From: Corallochytrium limacisporum Hawaii
Taxonomy: Eukaryota; Protista; Pluriformea
Assembly: GCA_002811645.1 (NCBI GenBank)
Contig: PDIP01000027.1
Location: forward strand, 62,001 to 126,000
DNA: 64,000 bases
Direction of reading: 5' to 3'
Below, piece by piece: positions 25,496 through 63,628 of this stretch; position 1 is the stretch's first letter; the number at the start of each line of letters is the position of its first letter. The position numbers were made by a program, and so were the translations under genes. Below the pieces are notes generated by a model that had not been told where the DNA came from, did not search any database, and saw nothing but the letters and a program-made list of their open reading frames with translations.

Positions 25496-28006
25496 CTAGA
25501 CATCATCTGTTTCTGTGTCCACTTCTACATCATGGACATGATCACTGTCCCGGAGGGTGGATACCATCTCTGCCTGCAAAGCATTCTGTGCTCGTGGACT
25601 GTCATATTTACCAGAAGTTAGAGGATTCATGACGATGTCAGAAGTGATGTATGCCAAGTCTGGCATGGATTCCAGGACCTCAAGGGCCCGCCTACTGAGC
25701 ACTCCCGTCTTCGTTTTGGAAGTATTGAGCAAGTTCATGACTTTGTCAGAAGTCGCTGGCATAGTGGACTTGTTCTCTTTGTCAATGCCGTAAAGCAGAT
25801 CATCAAATCCACCTGGTTTTGCATGCGAACTGGGGTGCTGTGATTCGCCGCCGCCTCGATCAAAGAAAGACAGGTCCAAATCAGCACCAGACATGGCATA
25901 GTTCCCAGATGCCACACTAGGGACGGCCTGCTTGGCAGTTGCCAAATTTGGCACTGGCGCACCCTCTGTGCCATTGTTCGGTGTTTCCTGTAATATGGGG
26001 CTCTGCGGTTCGTCCATGGAGAACGCAGTCGGTTGCAAACCGCCCATAGCAAAGTGATGGGCAGCAATCCCTGCCTCATCGTCCATAAACGCAAGACCCT
26101 TGATGGCCAAATGGTTGATGTTGGCACCCATGATCTTTGCAATTTCGATCTGGTTCTTGGACCCACTCCAGTTAAACTCCTCAGACAATCGGTTCTGAGC
26201 GTTTTCCACGGAAATAAGGATCTTCATCTTGTCAGACAGCGCAGATGCTGTTAAATTTTCAACCTCCTCTGATGGGAAGGTCTCCTCAGTCCGGGTTTGG
26301 AAAACTTCGCTAAGTGTCCTCGGCTTTACATTGCTACTGCGAGCTGCCTGCATCGTACCTGAGACCGCCTGAACGGGCACCGCTGGTGGCGGTGACTCAA
26401 ACTTCGCATCACCAAAGTCGCCGAAGTCATCGTCTCCACCGGCAGCCCAGCCACCATCACCCCATTCGTCATCTTCACCTTCCGCTTGGCCACCATCTAC
26501 CCACTCCTCGTCACCGCCCCAGCCATCATCATTGCCCCATTCGTCATCCACCTGTTTGCTCTCAGCGTTAACGTCCAATTCCGCGGCACCAGTCAGGCCT
26601 TCTTTAGAGGCCTCCGCCGGGATCTCACCCTTCGTATCAATTTCAAGAGCGGTCTCTATTGCAAAGTCGTCCGCTTCATTGACCGGACCGGGCCCGGCGG
26701 GTTTAACTTCCGTCTTCATTTCACCTGCAGCAGTCGCACATTCCTGGGGTGAGTTCTCGTGAACAGATCCCCCATCTACAACTTCATTCAGCTGAACCGG
26801 TGCCAGTGCAGACTGCGGTTGATCGAACACGTCCATCCTATCAACTCGGGCAGGTTGGTCACCGACGGCGAGTTCTAGAGAGCCTGAACCTATATTTCCG
26901 TGCGCGTCGTTGGTGCCGTTTGCTTTAGCGGGCGTATCGACACTATTTTCGGTCTGCTCTACGCATGTTTTGGTTGTGTAGATATCCGCTATCTCGGAAG
27001 CATGCTCTGTCTCGATGGCGACGACCGGTGTGTTGGGGCTGTTGGGAGTTTCCGGAGAGTGCTCAGATGCCGCCTGTAACTCAACTTTCATCGGGTCTTC
27101 TGGTCCAGAATCTTCTATCGCACTCTGAGACGCATCCGACATGATTTCTTTCTCCTTTAGATCATCTTCTATCTTAGACCCTATGTGGTCAAGGCTGGCA
27201 ACAACCGCATTGTCCTCGTCACGTTCTTCGTCGGCAGGTTTCGATTCCGTTGCTACCTGCGTTCCGTCCAGTTTGATTTCCTCATTTCCATCGATATTAG
27301 CCTTATGACTATGAACGAAGTCGAAGGTTTTGTTGCTAGCAATGTTGTCTTCGTCAGCACCTTTAGTGTTAGCCATTGTGAAAGTCATACTGCTTGTTGT
27401 TGGTTCCAAATCAACAACAATCTCTTCCTCTTCTTCATCTTGCGAGTCCATGGATGCAAGCTTTTCGTTGTCACCAATCGGGCCCCATTCAGTTGGATCA
27501 TCAGCAGTAGCCGGTACTGTTGTTTTCTTGTATGGAATTCCAGGGGCAGTCTCCGACATGGGCGATGATATCGTCGCGTCATCTTCCTTGACTGTTTCAA
27601 ATCCCGATTCATTTGGAGCAGATGTCCTAGTGGCCTCTGTACCTTTTGAAACTTTTGTTAAGTCTGGCTTTGCCATGGAGTTCTTGTCCTCTGCTACAGG
27701 GACAACAAACGACCCAAATTCATCCACACCGGGCACAGACGTCTGCTGTGTAGTTGGTTCCGGAGCAGGCGTAGGAGCACAGTGATCCGTGCTCGGCTCG
27801 CTGTTTTTAGGTGGCGGCGTATCAAAACTTCCAAAGTCATCATCTCCACCACCAGTTGTCCATTCTTCCGCCCAATCGTCGCCAATGCCTGCTTTTGTCT
27901 GTGCTGGTCCTGTAAAATCATCCCAAGCGTCCTCCTGCCCATCGTCTGTATTCGCTGGCCCTGCGAAATCGTCCCAGTCGTTGTCGTCAGGAGTGGCGTC
28001 TGTCAT
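25496..28006 (-). CDS. AFTPH: Aftiphilin-like AP-1/clathrin accessory protein
   Basis: Acidic disordered protein with WDDF, DDFGSF and DDDFGDFGD adaptin-ear motifs, FNWSGS...MG clathrin-box-domain motif, and C-terminal LS..A..VL.SMPDL.Y.....MNP. Confidence 0.8.
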   Translation of the reverse strand: MTDATPDDNDWDDFAGPANTDDGQEDAWDDFTGPAQTKAGIGDDWAEEWTTGGGDDDFGSFDTPPPKNSEPSTDHCAPTPAPEPTTQQTSVPGVDEFGSFVVPVAEDKNSMAKPDLTKVSKGTEATRTSAPNESGFETVKEDDATISSPMSETAPGIPYKKTTVPATADDPTEWGPIGDNEKLASMDSQDEEEEEIVVDLEPTTSSMTFTMANTKGADEDNIASNKTFDFVHSHKANIDGNEEIKLDGTQVATESKPADEERDEDNAVVASLDHIGSKIEDDLKEKEIMSDASQSAIEDSGPEDPMKVELQAASEHSPETPNSPNTPVVAIETEHASEIADIYTTKTCVEQTENSVDTPAKANGTNDAHGNIGSGSLELAVGDQPARVDRMDVFDQPQSALAPVQLNEVVDGGSVHENSPQECATAAGEMKTEVKPAGPGPVNEADDFAIETALEIDTKGEIPAEASKEGLTGAAELDVNAESKQVDDEWGNDDGWGGDEEWVDGGQAEGEDDEWGDGGWAAGGDDDFGDFGDAKFESPPPAVPVQAVSGTMQAARSSNVKPRTLSEVFQTRTEETFPSEEVENLTASALSDKMKILISVENAQNRLSEEFNWSGSKNQIEIAKIMGANINHLAIKGLAFMDDEAGIAAHHFAMGGLQPTAFSMDEPQSPILQETPNNGTEGAPVPNLATAKQAVPSVASGNYAMSGADLDLSFFDRGGGESQHPSSHAKPGGFDDLLYGIDKENKSTMPATSDKVMNLLNTSKTKTGVLSRRALEVLESMPDLAYITSDIVMNPLTSGKYDSPRAQNALQAEMVSTLRDSDHVHDVEVDTETDDV

Positions 28007-40125: not shown

Positions 40126-40836
40126 TTACTTCTTCTGCTTCCTCTGGTTTCTTTCATTCCTGTGACGCTGCCTTCTTTTTCCTCTCACTCCGCTCTGAGG
40201 CGAAAGATGGCTTTGTGCGGGTTCAGTTTGATCTGGCTTGCGTATAGATACCTTCCAGTCCTGAGAGCTCAAGAAAGTTTGCAGCTTCTGAATGACTTGA
40301 TTTTTTAAACTCTTTCGACGCTCTTGGTGGAAAGCCCAGAATTCAGCAGCCTCCTTGTATGCCAGTTCTTGTTGTCTCTCATACTGTGCCATGCAAATGG
40401 CAACTTTGGGAGCGCATTCATCTTGGATGCGCTTGTGTTGTTCAGGAGAGATCTTGTCCTTGCTGAGCTCATATTGCACCTGAGCCTTTTGTTTTTGCTT
40501 GTCCAAAAAGTGTATTAGACGTGAAAACTTCTCTTTTTCGGTCATGTGCACTCGCTGCACAGCGATATGTTGTGCAAGGACTTGGGGATACATTGTGTGT
40601 GTTACAAACAGGTAGCGGATGATCGCATCTTTAGCACTTTGGGTTTCATGGTCAACATGGGGAAAATTGCTGCTGATATCATGTGCATACGCATGCTCAT
40701 CGTGCTTTAAAGTGTCATTAAGACTCTGCGTTAGATCAACGGTTGTTGACTCTGCCATCTTTATCCCAGGCTTTGTGAATGTCCTTCCAAATGATAACCT
40801 TTGGGTCGTCGATCGTTTGATCAAGCTGACAAGCAT
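40126..40836 (-). CDS. Hypothetical protein (helical, basic C-terminus)
   Basis: 236-aa ORF convergent with GTPBP1 (72-bp gap), protein-like composition; no family recognised. Confidence 0.65.
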   Translation of the reverse strand: MLVSLIKRSTTQRLSFGRTFTKPGIKMAESTTVDLTQSLNDTLKHDEHAYAHDISSNFPHVDHETQSAKDAIIRYLFVTHTMYPQVLAQHIAVQRVHMTEKEKFSRLIHFLDKQKQKAQVQYELSKDKISPEQHKRIQDECAPKVAICMAQYERQQELAYKEAAEFWAFHQERRKSLKNQVIQKLQTFLSSQDWKVSIRKPDQTEPAQSHLSPQSGVRGKRRQRHRNERNQRKQKK

Positions 40837-41412
40837 GGTCTTGTTAAATATATCTACTTCACAGTATTTTAAGGTAGTACTGAGATTCTACAATGCTCTG
40901 AGATGATACACGAGAAAACACTGATTGATACGAGAATCTAAACTTATGAAGCGCGCACGATGGACATGGCTGTGGCAGTCTATTACTGGAAACTCTGCGA
41001 ACCTTCCCCCCTCCCCAAGAAGTCTCACTTGAGACTTTTCTCTTCATTGTGGGTCGTACCAATACCAATCACTGAAGGCCTCTTACCTGTGAGACTGGCA
41101 AAGTAAACTCAAATGATGCCGACAGCGGGGGTCCATTTGTAAGCGATCCAAGGAGACACCAACTCATAGAGGGAGCAATCCGAACGAATTCCCCTAGTTG
41201 GACAGAATAAATCCGGGGCTGTGAGCGATGGGAGGGGTGTAACCATGCAGATTGCGTACCCCAATTTATATGAAACTCGGTGCAACCAAATTAGCTGACA
41301 ACTCAGCCAGGGGAGGGATGACGGAAACAGGGGGAAAGGCTATTTGAAAGACTGCCTGATTGGAAGTCACATATGGCTACACTTCCTTGTCTGTGATATT
41401 CATCAATAAACG

Positions 41413-44409
41413 ATGGCAATATTGAATAGAGCATCTTTTCATCAGATGGCGTTGCAGTCGATAGTAACTTTCTATGTTCTCCTGATCTCAATCTCTGGAT
41501 CCAGGGCCGCAGTCTGTCCTAAGGCAACACTGGCTGGTGAAAGGGTGAATTTGTTCAATCCTGAGGATGTATCAGATTTTGAAGTTTCCGTCCTACTCAG
41601 TGATGCGTTTTGCATTGCGTCTACATGCCTGACCATTGAGGACCATGGCTATGATCTGATGGCCTACTGTGTCGCGGATGTCAACGATCCTTGTGTTTAT
41701 TTGTATGACAAGACAGGGTCAGGCAACAAGATCCTACCTACAAGCTTGTCTGCGAACATTGCAAACGAGCAATTCGGACTACTTGCTACGTTTTCAGGTC
41801 CTTTGCCCGATGCGGACTCCAGTCTAAGATTATTTTTAGGTAATGGATTTCGCAGTGGTGACAGGAGTGAGAACTTCGAGACCCAGGTGCTCGGTCACTG
41901 GATAAGCGCGAACAGTGCCTCTTTAGGCTGCTCATCATCGCCCCATGCCATTGAAGAGTACTGTAAACCTGTGACAGCTGATTTCGCACCCCAAATAACA
42001 GCAGAGTGGGGCTATGATGCGAATGAGCGGGTAATTGAAGTCATCACTGACATTGACAGGAATTCTGGCCTGCAGGCTACCTTCGAGGTGTCTTCACTAA
42101 CGATCGATGGTACCGACCATTATGACTTCGCGCATCCGATATCGATTTCTATTCAAAAACCTGCTTCGTTTATTTCCGTTGCGGTCTCCTCCACAGAGCA
42201 GGTCCACCAAGATCGGTTTGAACAACTTGACTGGCTGGACAGTTTAGATTCACAAATCGTAGAGGAGGAAAGTACCGAAGAGGAAGCGGACCGTTGGCTT
42301 GACCGCTACCGTGCCGGTGAAACTGGATTGGTTCTGCTTTACGCGCTCCCCGGTGGATACGACCCCTTGAAATCCGCTGCTGACTATTTCAGTTTAGATT
42401 GGATGAAAGATGGTATAATGACTTCATTTTACAGGGGTACACCATGGATAAAGGAAGCTCCTGCGGATTCTGTAGGTAGATATTGTCTCGAAATCTGTTC
42501 ACCACGAAGCTCACAGTGTAAAAGCTCATCCATTCAGTGTGAGGTTGGTTCATTCTCAATGCATACACTACAAACAGGAGCCTTGTTTACGAAGATGTCA
42601 ATGGGTGAGTCTGACTTCAATGAGTCCCCTCTGGATGTGACGGTTTCTTATGGAGATTACGAAGACACTCTGATTCGATTATGCAATCTTGATGCATGTG
42701 TGGGAGACACCGCAGAATATCCTGGTATGCTTGGCTTCTTCACTGCTAGTGTGGAAATTTCGGTTTCCGCTCAACCTTCTTTCCTGGATTATGAGATCTG
42801 GGTGAACTCAAATACGCTAGAAGTCGCCACTGTGACAGCGGATGAGTTTGGAGACGAATGTGGTAGTTTGGGAGTTTCCAACTACACTTTCCTTGACGAA
42901 AATCGCCTCACGAATGCAGACTTCTGTAGGGCACCTTTTGGAAGCTGTGCATTCAAGACCATGAGTAACATCGCGTCTTTTAGAGAGCCATTCGAGTCCA
43001 GTCTTATTAAAGCTGGTCTGGGTCATTTCGATCCCCTTTCCTCTAAGGCGATCTTTGACGTTGATGATGCAAACCCTTGGCAAGTTACCTTGCGAATCCC
43101 ACTGGATCATCCTCAGCTCACGGATATATTTAAAAGGCCGAAACTCCCTTCTGCTGACGATTGTGAGCCTCAGGCGGTCCTGGTCAACATTATAAACTAT
43201 CGAGTTCAGTCGTCCTTTTCAGTGTTGAACGAAGGCACAGGTACTGGAGTGATTGAAGCGTCCTTGCAATGCAGCAAGATGGCAGGAGGTGCTGTGTTTG
43301 AGACCTCTGTTGCACATGAAGTGGACGCTGGAGACAACCAGACGTTCAACTTTTCTGGATATCTACCAGCGTCATATCAGGAAGAAGATAGGGTTGGCAG
43401 TCTGTCATGTATTGTAAGCTATGAGTTGGTAACTAGAAGAAGCCTTTGGCCAGTTGAGCAGTTTGAGAGGTCTTGTGCTGCTGCTACGATTTGGACGGTA
43501 GATGGGCATACGCAACCAGTGACATCATGTGCCACAACCTCTACTCTGACTGCTGATGACTTCAAAGCTGATCGCGACATCGACAATACCACACGAGTCA
43601 ATGTTTCGGGCCTTACTTTGCGCAGCTCATGCTCTCCCACTCAGGTGACCATAGCAAGACTGTCTTTAAGCTGCGCCGCTGATGGACAAATCGTGACCTC
43701 CCAGAAATTGGTCGAATTGACTGCTGCTGAGACGGCGTTGTCGATGCAAATTGAGGTCATCAGCACAGACTTTGGTTATGATTGTGCGTTAACGATATCT
43801 ATTCTGAAACCAACTGGCGAAGAAATTGTGTTTGCGAACAACTTTTCAGTCGCCGCGGAGGAGCAACCTCCTGGTACCACGCCAGGATCCACATCGACCA
43901 GTGCCCCGTATCCAAGTGACACCACGTCCCCGACAGACCCTGAAGAAAGCGAAACAACTCCAGTTGCTGACGACAAGGACAGCGGATTGAGTCCCGCTGT
44001 GCTCGGGATCAGCATTGCATTGCCCGCTACATTGCTTTTCTTTGTAGGTGGGATCCTACATCAGAGACACAGAAAGCAGTCCAGGGCTGTTAACCCACAA
44101 CATCTGAAATTTCAAATCGAGGGGCAGGATTTCAGTTTGATCACAAGTTGGGCAATAAGAACGGAGGCCGCCACATTGACCCAAGCCAAAGCATCCGACC
44201 ATTGTGAAATACTGAAGTTTTTCTCAAACCCGGATTGGACTCTCGATGGGGTTTGCGCATTCAGCCCGCATGACCTAGTGGCTTCCATGGATCTACCTCA
44301 CGTCCAGATTCGTGCCTCCGAAGACCCAGAAATCTACACAGAAAAAGTTGGAAAGAGCACCGTTATCTGGTTGTATAGTCCTCACGGACTATACAAACTC
44401 GAGTCCTGA
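41413..44409 (+). CDS. HAP2: Divergent HAP2/GCS1-like fusexin (class II fusogen), type I membrane protein
   Basis: Signal peptide (possible start at 41446). Collinear HAP2 motifs: PISISIQK-x20-E, YRG...RYCLE, QPSFLDY, GDECGSLGVS...F...FC..PFGSC, ADD, N.G....ASLQCS. Ser/Thr/Pro stalk, single TM (about 43996-44060), basic stop-transfer QRHRK. Confidence 0.72.
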   Translation: MAILNRASFHQMALQSIVTFYVLLISISGSRAAVCPKATLAGERVNLFNPEDVSDFEVSVLLSDAFCIASTCLTIEDHGYDLMAYCVADVNDPCVYLYDKTGSGNKILPTSLSANIANEQFGLLATFSGPLPDADSSLRLFLGNGFRSGDRSENFETQVLGHWISANSASLGCSSSPHAIEEYCKPVTADFAPQITAEWGYDANERVIEVITDIDRNSGLQATFEVSSLTIDGTDHYDFAHPISISIQKPASFISVAVSSTEQVHQDRFEQLDWLDSLDSQIVEEESTEEEADRWLDRYRAGETGLVLLYALPGGYDPLKSAADYFSLDWMKDGIMTSFYRGTPWIKEAPADSVGRYCLEICSPRSSQCKSSSIQCEVGSFSMHTLQTGALFTKMSMGESDFNESPLDVTVSYGDYEDTLIRLCNLDACVGDTAEYPGMLGFFTASVEISVSAQPSFLDYEIWVNSNTLEVATVTADEFGDECGSLGVSNYTFLDENRLTNADFCRAPFGSCAFKTMSNIASFREPFESSLIKAGLGHFDPLSSKAIFDVDDANPWQVTLRIPLDHPQLTDIFKRPKLPSADDCEPQAVLVNIINYRVQSSFSVLNEGTGTGVIEASLQCSKMAGGAVFETSVAHEVDAGDNQTFNFSGYLPASYQEEDRVGSLSCIVSYELVTRRSLWPVEQFERSCAAATIWTVDGHTQPVTSCATTSTLTADDFKADRDIDNTTRVNVSGLTLRSSCSPTQVTIARLSLSCAADGQIVTSQKLVELTAAETALSMQIEVISTDFGYDCALTISILKPTGEEIVFANNFSVAAEEQPPGTTPGSTSTSAPYPSDTTSPTDPEESETTPVADDKDSGLSPAVLGISIALPATLLFFVGGILHQRHRKQSRAVNPQHLKFQIEGQDFSLITSWAIRTEAATLTQAKASDHCEILKFFSNPDWTLDGVCAFSPHDLVASMDLPHVQIRASEDPEIYTEKVGKSTVIWLYSPHGLYKLES

Positions 44410-44412
44410 GCT

Positions 44413-44979
44413 CTACGGAGCAGCTGTACTCTTCACAGTGATGGCCTGAGACGGAGTGATCTTGAAGCCGTTTAGCTGCGAGATTGCCTCCTTTGCACCC
44501 TCTTCACTATCGTATCGTACAAGGGCTGTTTGTTTCCCCGAAAGCAATTCAATTTTTGATAGTCCCTTAATCTGATTAAACAACATCATAATGACTGCTT
44601 CAGTTGTTTCTCTTGGGAGTTCTGTTACGACTACAGTGTACGAAGACGCTGCGTGACAATCCGCGTCAGGGTCAATCTCCATGGACTCCGCGACAAACTT
44701 TCTCAGAATCTTCGAGCGTTGCTTCGCATAATCTATCCGCATGGGTTTGCTGAAGAAATTAAAACCCTGGAGTTCACTCTTAGCCTCTGTTGCAGAGGCG
44801 AGATCTTTGTAGACGACGAAGGCTTGACCTCGCTTCTTTATGCCTTTGTGTGCTACTATGTCTAGCACCGGACCGTGCAATGAAAACAGGGAATACAATG
44901 CTTTCTTCAGCTCCGGAATTTTAACCTTCTCATTAAGATTATTGACGTATAACGTCTGATTCGGTTTGTTCACGCTCAT
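44413..44979 (-). CDS. U1A/U2B''/SNF family snRNP protein (two RRMs)
   Basis: PNQTLYVNNLNEKVK..ELKK.LY.LFS..G..LDIVA....K.RGQAFV; second RRM with LP.E.....LF.Q and L.GFKITP. The DIVA loop is U2B''/SNF-like. Confidence 0.93.
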   Translation of the reverse strand: MSVNKPNQTLYVNNLNEKVKIPELKKALYSLFSLHGPVLDIVAHKGIKKRGQAFVVYKDLASATEAKSELQGFNFFSKPMRIDYAKQRSKILRKFVAESMEIDPDADCHAASSYTVVVTELPRETTEAVIMMLFNQIKGLSKIELLSGKQTALVRYDSEEGAKEAISQLNGFKITPSQAITVKSTAAP

Positions 44980-45705
44980 TTCTATGCCGAGACAAGGACT
45001 CGTACTTTGCCGAATGCTTTCCTAGGTGATCATTGTGGGACTCACGACACAAAATCTACAAACTCTAAATGTCTTTTACATGTGCAACACACGATGCTCT
45101 TCGTTGACTGTTCTCTATGCTATGGCCGGAGATGCAAAAGTACCCGCACAGACCTTGCGACCGAGGGCACGTTTGCAGACTTGTCGCGCTCCGAACTCAC
45201 GGATGCCCTCCTACGGCACCACACTCAACGAGCCGCGCGGTTCGGGCCCCGATTTCTTTTCCAAACGGTTTCGGTCGGGGAGCGGGTCTCGCTCTAGCTG
45301 TCGGCCGTCGCCTCGGCCCTTGCACGTCGCGTGGGGTTTTCGGAGTAGATGGGGAAGCGGGTGCGTGGGGTGCGTGGGTGCGGACCCGCGGTCCCATTGG
45401 CGCAACGGTTCACTGTCTGCGGGTTCTGCATGGCACCAGACTATCCGAATATTTGTACTCCAGAGTCTATTCCAACGTCATTTTCCCCCCTTATTTCTTC
45501 ATAATAATCGATCAGTGTACCGGGACGATTCACCTATTTGAATTGTGTGTTTTGGTTTCTCCTTCCAGGACGCAATTGTAGCGTAAGTAAAACTCTTCTG
45601 TGACTTTCTATATATTGGTTCGGGTGTGACTATAGAGCAATGGGAAGGCGGCGTGTGGATCTTCCTTCCTGAAGAAAGTAAACAGGTGCACATTTCACGC
45701 TGAAA

Positions 45706-61400: not shown

Positions 61401-63628
61401 CTGCTCTTTGGTGTACCCCAACCTCTCCCTTGATCAGACTTTGAGCGACGGAGTGACTAATTCCAGCCTCTTTTTCTGATGCCCAGAACAGAGCACCTGG
61501 CATGGTAAGGACATGCACAAAGTTGGTTAATCTCATCTTATTTAGCTGTCTTCACTTTCTTTCTAGCATGCCAGCTAAAACGACGTCTGAAGTAAGAATG
61601 AGCCAAATTCTTACGTAGACGCTCAAGGACCTAAAAATAGATTGCGACTGCCGGCTCCTTCGCTCGGCGATCCACGCGATCGACATTTTCAATACAAAAT
61701 ATACTACAAATCTAGCAGACACCGAAGCAGAGCAGAGCTGTTCAGAGCAAGGAAAAAAGCGACGGACACTGAGAACTGCACATCTCTAAGTCTATTTGTT
61801 TTTTAGATCATCGCAAAAACTGCTTAGGAGCAAACAACATTTGGCGCCTGTTGCCTTTTTACGGACGAATGGACTCGGAACTCAGAGCACACTCCTACGC
61901 ACCGTGGTCGGTCCGACACGGGTCCTTCCAAAGTCCTCAGGTGAAAAGTCCACAGAACGAAAACGAGTACTGGCCTTAATGAGCAGGCAGACTGGAGCAG
62001 AGATTTACCTGGAAAGGACACGTGGTGCTCCATTCCCATTACTGTTTGTCATGCCTCTTACGCGGCGCGCTTGCTCCGTGCCCAAGGCGTTCTGCTGTAC
62101 AAGCTCAATAGCTGCAAGCAGCAACAGGAAGAGGCTTGCAGCAGCAGCAGCGCTAAATACCCAGAAAAACGTTTCGAGAACAGCACATGGTAGCAATCCC
62201 AGTGCAATGATTTTGAGCCCACAGGGTAGCGCTAGCAATGACTGAAAGTCCTCTGTTGCTGTGCGGATACGTGCTAGTGGATGGACGTCCCAGATTTTGG
62301 TGAGATCGCTGGATATCAACTGCGATCACTTGTCGGAACCCCGTACTGGCTCAATTCCTTCGCTGACTCGACTACGTCTCTCGCTCCCAGAAAAAGAAAA
62401 CAAAGATGGTTGTGGCAGAACAAATGGAACGGGTTATCGCGTAGCTGACAGTACGGTTTCAGACCTTATCGCCCAAACCTTGGAATGACATCGTATCTAG
62501 TTTTGGTGGGCACACTTAAATGTTCTACAGGTGACATCAAACCAAACTCACCACCACCACCCCATCGAGGGCACTACTGTTACTTCTTCGATCTCTAACA
62601 CTTTACCTTCCATACCATTTTGTTTTTCCTTCTTGGCCTGCCTCAGTTCGTTCCTCTTTGCACCGCAACTCCCCTCCTCCCTGCGGCAATGGAGAAATGA
62701 AAATGAACCCAACCCAGGCTTCTTTAAGAATACACTTTTCGTGCCGCTCAGGTTTTCGCTCTCCATCGCTCCTCTTTGTTCTGCTCTGCCCGACCGCCAA
62801 CTCCCCCACTCCTGTGCTGGCCGTCAGCTGATTGGCCGCGCAGGGGAAGTCGGATGATGGCGTACCGAACACCGTGTTCTTGCACCATCAGAAGTCCGCG
62901 AATAAGAACACGTTCGAAACCAAAACGAAGGGGAAATTAGACTCCCTTGGTGTATGTTCAGCGCTTAAATCCTCCTCTCTTCTCCGCTACCCTCCCCTCC
63001 CTTTTCATGTTCGTCGACTAAATTCATTTTCGAAGGAATTCCAATTTTTTTCTTGTTCCAGCCAACGCGTTTGTATGTATTCCGATACTCTGACTTCAGT
63101 GAAAATTACTGTGACGGGTTCACGCCGTCTCGGAACGAGGCATGCAACTGACAGCTATCGCCAAAACCAGAAATGCCGACCAACTGGGGGCTCACAGCAG
63201 TATTTTTGGTTGTGGAAATTCTGAAGCATACTCGGCAGCAGCAAAGGGAAACCGACAACCACAAAAGCAAACAGAGGAAAACAAAATAACACGAACCCAC
63301 GGGGAAATTCTTCAAATCGTGTTATTCGCCTGTGGCAGGTACAAAGCTGGAAACTCCGCGCACGGGGAGAAGGGGTGTCTATTTCATAATAGTCGATTTT
63401 CTGTATTCTTCCTTATCATGTTCTGGTCAAAGGGGCGCGGTCGGGAATCGTTGAAATCCAAGTAACAGGTATTAACGGACAGCCAGGGACCTCCCCCACC
63501 TTGCTGGGATTTAAGTTTTTCTCCCCCGTCAGGTCTCCCCCCCCCCACGCGAATGAAGGAGTTGTTGTTGAAAATATCAAACATTTTGCGTGCGGCACTC
63601 ACCACACACAAGGGAGAAAGAGAGGAGG

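Follow-up and report, generated by a model that had tools for sequence, protein, structure and literature searches.

The gene described here lies in a window of 64,000 nucleotides (positions 62,001 to 126,000 of contig PDIP01000027.1) from Corallochytrium limacisporum Hawaii, a unicellular holozoan with a genome of 24.1 Mb and 7,535 genes (PMC5560861); the genome searched comprises 24,109,830 bases in 286 contigs. At positions 41413-44409 of the window an open reading frame (ORF) on the forward strand runs uninterrupted over 998 codons, and EukProt contains the product of 998 amino acids (aa) as a predicted protein, in a cluster of which it is the one member. An earlier note on this DNA took the protein for a hidden, remodelled fusogen of the HAP2/GCS1 type. 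The frame, the topology and the positions of all the motifs quoted there are correct, and the protein is probably a remote descendant of HAP2, only not HAP2 proper. It has the general layout of HAP2/GCS1, with a signal peptide (judged from the hydropathy profile only), a large ectodomain, a single transmembrane helix and a tail, and the ectodomain contains 24 cysteines and 7 sequons and has a net charge of -74. The gene and its parts, with domains I, II and III written as DI, DII and DIII, are:

41413-44409, forward strand: single-exon gene of a probable divergent HAP2 paralogue, a type I membrane protein of 998 aa (ORF read directly; EukProt predicted protein)
41413-41511, forward strand: probable signal peptide, from aa 1 to roughly 33 (hydropathy peaks over aa 12-35; cleavage site inferred)
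41512-41904, forward strand: additional domain at the N-terminus, aa 34-164, with 5 Cys (precedes the start of the HAP2 alignment; HAP2 is without it)
41905-42222, forward strand: presumed DI and initial strands of DII, aa 165-270, including C173/C184 and K249-x20-E270 (the N-terminal sub-profile lands here unaided)
42223-42465, forward strand: enlarged bc connection, aa 271-351, no Cys (alignments to HAP2)
42466-42570, forward strand: strands c and d with the short polar cd loop between them, aa 352-386, with C358, C362, K370 and C376 (alignments; the segment alone gives z -0.3)
42850-42948, forward strand: HAP2 ij-loop hallmark motif, aa 480-512, with G480, C483, G487, F493, C505 and C512 (hhalign P 0.0035; z 5.2)
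43180-43497, forward strand: predicted DIII-like Ig fold, spanning about aa 590-695, in which N606, G608, C620 and C666 stand at HAP2 columns (mafft --add alignment)
43528-43860, forward strand: additional beta domain close to the membrane, about aa 706-816, with 4 Cys (no family match)
43861-43983, forward strand: stalk rich in Ser, Thr, Pro and acidic residues, aa 817-857 (read directly)
43996-44058, forward strand: transmembrane helix spanning about aa 862-882, with basic residues after it (Kyte-Doolittle mean over 19 residues as high as 2.2)
44059-44406, forward strand: cytoplasmic tail, about 115 aa long (no recognised domain found)

The relationship to HAP2 was assessed against an alignment of 45 HAP2 sequences, with 2,229 stretches, taken in six frames from 278 kb of the same genome, as background. 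The ij-loop motif gives the strongest signal. It is the one local match that hhalign finds to the alignment (aa 480-517, 33 columns, probability 9%), and an ij sub-profile that is free to land settles on aa 473-528 with a score that none of 300 shuffles reaches. Among the 2,229 stretches it ranks second, after the true HAP2, with 12.1 bits against 4.6 for the next stretch in glocal mode and 8.2 against 3.8 in local mode. Extrapolated to a proteome of 7,535 proteins we estimate about 0.1 chance matches of this quality by the glocal score and 1-4 by the local one. That this motif matches the HAP2 profile, as the earlier note had held, is thus upheld beyond chance by hhalign, the shuffles and the own-genome decoys. 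The N-terminal DI/DII sub-profile lands at aa 165-275 (z 2.4, 9 of 300 shuffles as good) and the cd sub-profile at aa 344-401, where it is not significant; these three landings follow the order of HAP2, and DIII and two other segments land elsewhere. When the profile is forced end to end on the ectodomain, z is 3.1-3.5 or 4.3, and 6.2 with one sequence per lineage, and the glocal score is the top one among 44 long natural decoys. With hmmsearch the HAP2 profile gives 0.4 bits, bettered by 4 of 1,000 local shuffles. Identity to the HAP2s in the multiple alignment is 11-20%. Global alignment to the single HAP2 P0011 yields 116 identities in 440 positions (z 5.5-6.8, or 3.6-5.2 with the ij motif masked); the masked signal persists with P0025 too, and with a Dictyostelium HAP2 it amounts to z 3.3-3.9. 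Since such single HAP2s are the best of 47 and were picked afterwards, the corrected P is a few percent.

The register was taken from hhalign, MAFFT and mafft --add. All three place E270 in the strand-b Glu column of HAP2, just as the earlier note had argued from the K249-x20-E270 spacing, and pair DSVGRYC (aa 352-358) with the SQGFCC motif and SMHTL (aa 382-386) with SAHCL, Thr385 standing in place of the Cys. This register moves R341 into the bc insertion and brings K370 (alternatively R365) to the salt-bridge Arg column, with C376 as the Cys after it, so the pairing of R341...RYCLE with R...AHCLR had to be given up. Neither is QPSFLDY, once equated with IPSFEDF, in the register of the aligners, as it sits downstream of the KYLxIP strand; the equation of SADD with RADD is ambiguous, as it is retained by hhalign and MAFFT favours aa 561-569. 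Further on, G431-D432 corresponds to the GD motif, N606, G608, C620 and C666 fall on DIII columns, and the ij motif, with a 5-aa insertion, keeps six of the seven invariant columns of alignment A2 (all those listed above). In CrHAP2 the invariant Glu-Arg salt bridge is formed by E126 and R185, and a Lys at the Arg position is functional there (R185K; PMC5332557).

Six of the ten DII cysteines are kept, short of the five disulfides of HAP2 by two whole pairs if our reading of the connectivity holds. The lost columns are those of C125, C135, C153 and C189 in the genome's own HAP2. C135/C189 correspond to C147-C210 of CrHAP2, a documented disulfide (PMC9259645) of which both partners are gone, while both partners of C362/C376, corresponding to C167-C190 (10.1101/324194), remain. 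The disulfide numbering in PMC5332557 and PMC6089408 suggests that C125 pairs with C153 or C154; if so, exactly two whole disulfides have been lost, both on the bc connection, and the chance of such a clean paired loss is 10/210, about 1 in 20, for a connectivity that is in part inferred. The DIII pair is kept (C620/C666 align to C443/C482), and the presumed DI pair C173/C184 has a spacing of 11 against 10, of which the programs align only C173. The cd loop (aa 363-381) is short and consists mostly of Ser, Gln, Cys and charged residues, with I374, V378 and F381 as its only non-polar ones, and is thus not the hydrophobic fusion loop of HAP2. The aromatic residues gather instead in the bc connection, whose 81 aa (the HAP2 of this genome has 37 there) include 11 of them, and which in both low-confidence models contains helices near aa 289-300 and 318-325. 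It may be a candidate replacement for the membrane-insertion element.

The protein is not the organism's hidden fusogen that the earlier note made of it, for an ordinary and intact HAP2 sits on another contig. A PF10699 search of the genome gives one gene, C246:261170-262651 on the reverse strand, with 340 bits (E 6.5e-101). This canonical HAP2 has 600 aa, all the hallmark cysteines, E110 and R170; it is identical to EukProt Clim_evm68s214, its locus (L001:1300-3102, reverse strand, equal to C246) lies about 2.2 kb from the contig end, and it groups with animal HAP2s (Shimodaira-Hasegawa-like approximate likelihood ratio test 93). Open frames match Mnd1 (C186:184510-184689, forward strand, E 3.4e-24) and the Spo11/TopoVI-A family (C25:74792-74977, reverse strand, E 3.1e-23), both of which would be consistent with meiosis. 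Because of the intact HAP2 on the other contig, the proposal that this organism can fuse cells stands on these three genes and not on the one in the window. We found no paper that reports either the canonical HAP2 or the window gene, which does not prove that there is none.

At search level the 998-aa protein is an orphan. Word-indexed search of 5.8 billion clustered proteins (length-limited) and phmmer against 1.84 billion representatives returned only the protein itself; PHROGs, searched by domain, and the metagenome and viral contigs searched held no homologue, and a second HAP2 search added no sequences to the alignment. BLAST against the genome's own HAP2 is not significant (E 0.5), the genome-wide ij-profile search did not pick the gene as a candidate and neither did the PF10699 search, whose gathering cut-off of 27.4 bits the protein does not reach. 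PF14884 (EFF-1/AFF-1) has no match in the protein; the genome-wide search with that family ran without a positive control. The earlier note would have dropped its claim if no HAP2 profile matched over aa 175-700, and at search-level significance none does.

A number of results speak against descent from HAP2 or against a role in fusion. Pfam, searched with the whole protein and by domain, gives no family at E<=10 apart from three sub-threshold fragment matches, PDB sequences give no match, and the ESM Atlas, queried by features and shape, holds no language-model homologue. With aa 478-518 masked, the family profile falls to z 0.9, or to 1.7 where each lineage contributes a single sequence, and 16 of 200 shuffles attain the family-mean pairwise z, which is then 0.61. 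Blind addition to the alignment matches 26 of 62 conserved columns (11 of 400 shuffles as good), 19 of them outside the ij motif (28 of 400). LxNQ is lost and the cage Gln column holds Glu. Prediction from the single sequence yielded no usable fold, with a predicted local distance difference test (pLDDT) of 31, and the HAP2-guided model, which is circular, reaches pLDDT 53 and a predicted template modelling score of 0.39, so neither confirms a class II fold independently; only in that circular model does the DIII-like region attain pLDDT 65-80, and the DIII profile alone is weak. The life-cycle study of Corallochytrium reports neither cell fusion nor sex (10.1101/2020.11.12.379420). Foldseek/VIA matches of the guided model were discarded as evidence, and no placement in a tree was accepted, the branch being 8.3 changes per column long in a quick tree only. 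Even so, the ij motif, the collinearity, the cysteine pattern and the topology together make remote descent from HAP2 probable.

Outside the HAP2-like part, the extra N-terminal domain has no Pfam or PHROG match and the membrane-proximal domain is possibly a duplicate of DIII; a proven origin by such duplication was rejected, as the similarity is not significant (102 of 1000 shuffles). A link between the cytoplasmic tail and sponge HAP2 was likewise rejected. The transmembrane helix and its flanks (aa 846-907; 43948-44133) resemble those of a 429-aa type I protein of the same genome (L003:1312-2601, reverse strand; 38%, E 0.0017) that is otherwise unrelated, and the likeness is either a shared anchor module or convergence.

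The neighbouring genes are of the housekeeping kind: Exo5, a GTP_EFTU-family GTPase, a two-RRM gene named U1A-like on our reading of its sequence, Dus, an ABC1 kinase and RecQ. The GC content of third codon positions (GC3) is 0.47 in the window gene and 0.48 in canonical HAP2, with most neighbours higher (0.49-0.61), and there is no sign that the gene came from a virus or mobile element. A 236-aa ORF without Pfam match (40126-40836, reverse strand, GC3 0.48) is divergent from the gene over a gap of 576 bases, and another such ORF, of 836 aa (25496-28006, reverse strand), lies in a region with strong AT skew. The U1A-like gene is convergent, its end lying 3 bases from that of the window gene (44409/44413), so their 3' untranslated regions (UTRs) must overlap the coding region of the partner. 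Contigs from a run that we guess to be RNA of the same strain cover 43394-44353 (aa 661-981) and the U1A-like gene, and leave intergenic DNA and the upstream ORF uncovered. This suggests possible expression of the gene; as the contigs are strandless and the genes end so close together, a long U1A 3' UTR could also account for them. Marine metagenomes from one 2025 study (runs X4-X7) contain near-identical short pieces of 41393-41775 and 42326-42592 with a single difference, G>T at 41504, and the gene is therefore not confined to the assembly of the cultured isolate. In another sample labelled as the same species (run X9) the U1A-like gene (44705-45079) differs at 28 of 375 bases, about 7.5%, which exceeds what would be expected of Corallochytrium strains called "almost identical" (10.1101/2020.11.12.379420); the sample is possibly a cryptic species.

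Since it stays below the profile cut-off, lacks the full set of five DII disulfides and has no hydrophobic cd loop, the protein should not be filed as HAP2 proper; the identity given to it in the earlier note holds as probable remote descent and no further. The best name is "probable HAP2-derived, HgrB-like protein". We tentatively read it as a lineage-specific, extremely diverged HAP2/GCS1 paralogue that would still take part in cell-cell fusion, most likely of gametes, alone or as a non-redundant partner of canonical HAP2, for which the pairing of HgrB with HgrA in Dictyostelium may serve as a model.

A role in fusion is only moderately ahead of the somewhat unlikely explanation that the fold derives from HAP2 and is no longer fusogenic, having been repurposed as an adhesin, receptor or wall-associated protein while canonical HAP2 performs the fusion. 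Erosion is strongest in the features specific to fusion, with a short polar cd loop, two tip disulfides that are apparently lost, and no cage Gln or LxNQ; the Arg column holds Lys. The branch of 8.3 compares with a median of 0.65, two domains have been added, and the genome has its canonical HAP2. Yet the best-kept piece is the ij cage, whose part in holding the fusion loops is known (PMC5332557). A basic residue and E270 are retained, and HgrB, which is like HAP2 in this motif alone, is nevertheless needed for fusion (PMC4910948). Less probable still is an unrelated beta-rich, cysteine-containing type I surface protein with motifs that arose by chance when many genes were scanned. The sole strong motif has a pairwise P of 0.0035-0.015, the local scores allow for 1-4 such matches per proteome, the masked profile tests are not significant, and by language model the protein neighbours, at below 0.8, clusters of the generic Ig-like CARDB and fimbrillin kinds. 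Against this, the glocal estimate is far lower and would be lower still among large type I ectodomains, the ij motif is correctly spaced from the N-terminal match and the DIII-like Cys pair, a pairwise signal with P0011 and P0025 survives masking, and the cysteines appear to have been lost in pairs. An Fsx1-like fusexin of viral origin, or one taken up from an archaeal mobile element, instead of a duplicate of eukaryotic HAP2, is very improbable: the fourth, membrane-proximal domain, the few tip disulfides and the net charge do recall Fsx1 (net -67, domain IV; PMC9259645) and the protein is no nearer to the HAP2 of its own genome than to the rest, but the HAP2 ij and cd cysteines are kept, the C147-C210-type bond that alone is kept in Fsx1 (PMC9259645) is lost here, the neighbours are housekeeping genes, GC3 matches that of canonical HAP2, and viral contigs and PHROGs hold nothing.

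If the diverged paralogue does fuse cells, HAP2 biology suggests that aa 165-695 would form DI, DII and DIII of a class II fold, and that E270 together with K370 (or R365) would hold the cd loop against the ij cage. After a trigger the tip of DII would enter the partner membrane and trimerisation would follow, with DIII, the extra domain and the stalk folding back to the transmembrane anchor. The most speculative step is that the enlarged aromatic bc connection would do the inserting, freed by the loss of two tethering disulfides; we assign insertion to it because a short and polar cd loop makes a poor fusion loop. The bc connection is known to aid insertion in TcHAP2 and in bunyavirus Gc (PMC6089408). 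Adhesion or regulation may be the task of the extra domain at the N-terminus. The full combination, a working eukaryotic fusexin invisible to profiles, with insertion moved from cd to bc, two extra ectodomain modules and a two-fusogen system with canonical HAP2, we consider unlikely.

As far as we know, many lineages, among them fungi and most animals, apparently have no HAP2. Such absence is judged by profile searches, and a probable HAP2 descendant that scores about 0 bits against HAP2 profiles means that the family can drift far and keep its skeleton. If there is a working fusexin invisible to profiles, genomes scored as lacking HAP2 may hide others, and a unicellular relative of animals would have a two-fusogen system. 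Stable transfection works in Corallochytrium (10.1101/2020.11.12.379420), which opens both genes to tagging and testing and makes the question of cryptic sex in this holozoan lineage directly testable.

With HAP2/GCS1 (PF10699; CrHAP2 5MF1/6E18, AtHAP2 5OW3, TcHAP2 5OW4, Clim_evm68s214) the protein shares the order of motifs, the Glu, the Gly, Cys and Phe of the ij motif, six of ten DII cysteines, the DIII Cys pair and type I topology; it differs in a similarity below Pfam level, the Lys at the Arg column, the two lost disulfides, the bc connection, the short polar cd loop, the extra N-terminal and membrane-proximal domains and its length, 998 against about 600 aa. Archaeal Fsx1 (7P4L, PMC9259645) likewise has an extra fourth ectodomain module, an acidic ectodomain and a remodelled DII, whereas it retains other disulfides and has more than one transmembrane helix against one here, and the window gene lies outside any mobile element. 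Systems with two HAP2s are already known in three other lineages, and what is new here is the lineage together with the architecture. In Plasmodium (HAP2p; PMC11957333) and in Leishmania (HAP2-2; PMC10630298) the genome has a second HAP2-related gene, and there both genes are required for mating; the Leishmania pair has 26% mutual identity and both members carry a recognised GCS1 domain, whereas the Corallochytrium protein escapes the profile. The nearest parallel, Dictyostelium HgrB (PMC4910948), compared by its published description, has a signal peptide, a large ectodomain and a transmembrane helix, is lineage-restricted, occurs alongside a canonical HAP2, and resembles HAP2 only in the HAP2-GCS1 motif, which lies about 200 residues further downstream than usual in both proteins (496-556 in HgrB, 480-512 here). 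No link to HgrB could be detected by sequence, phmmer having returned only the Corallochytrium protein. The lineages are independent and the tail of about 115 aa sets the Corallochytrium protein apart. HgrB is essential for fusion in Dictyostelium alongside HgrA (PMC4910948).

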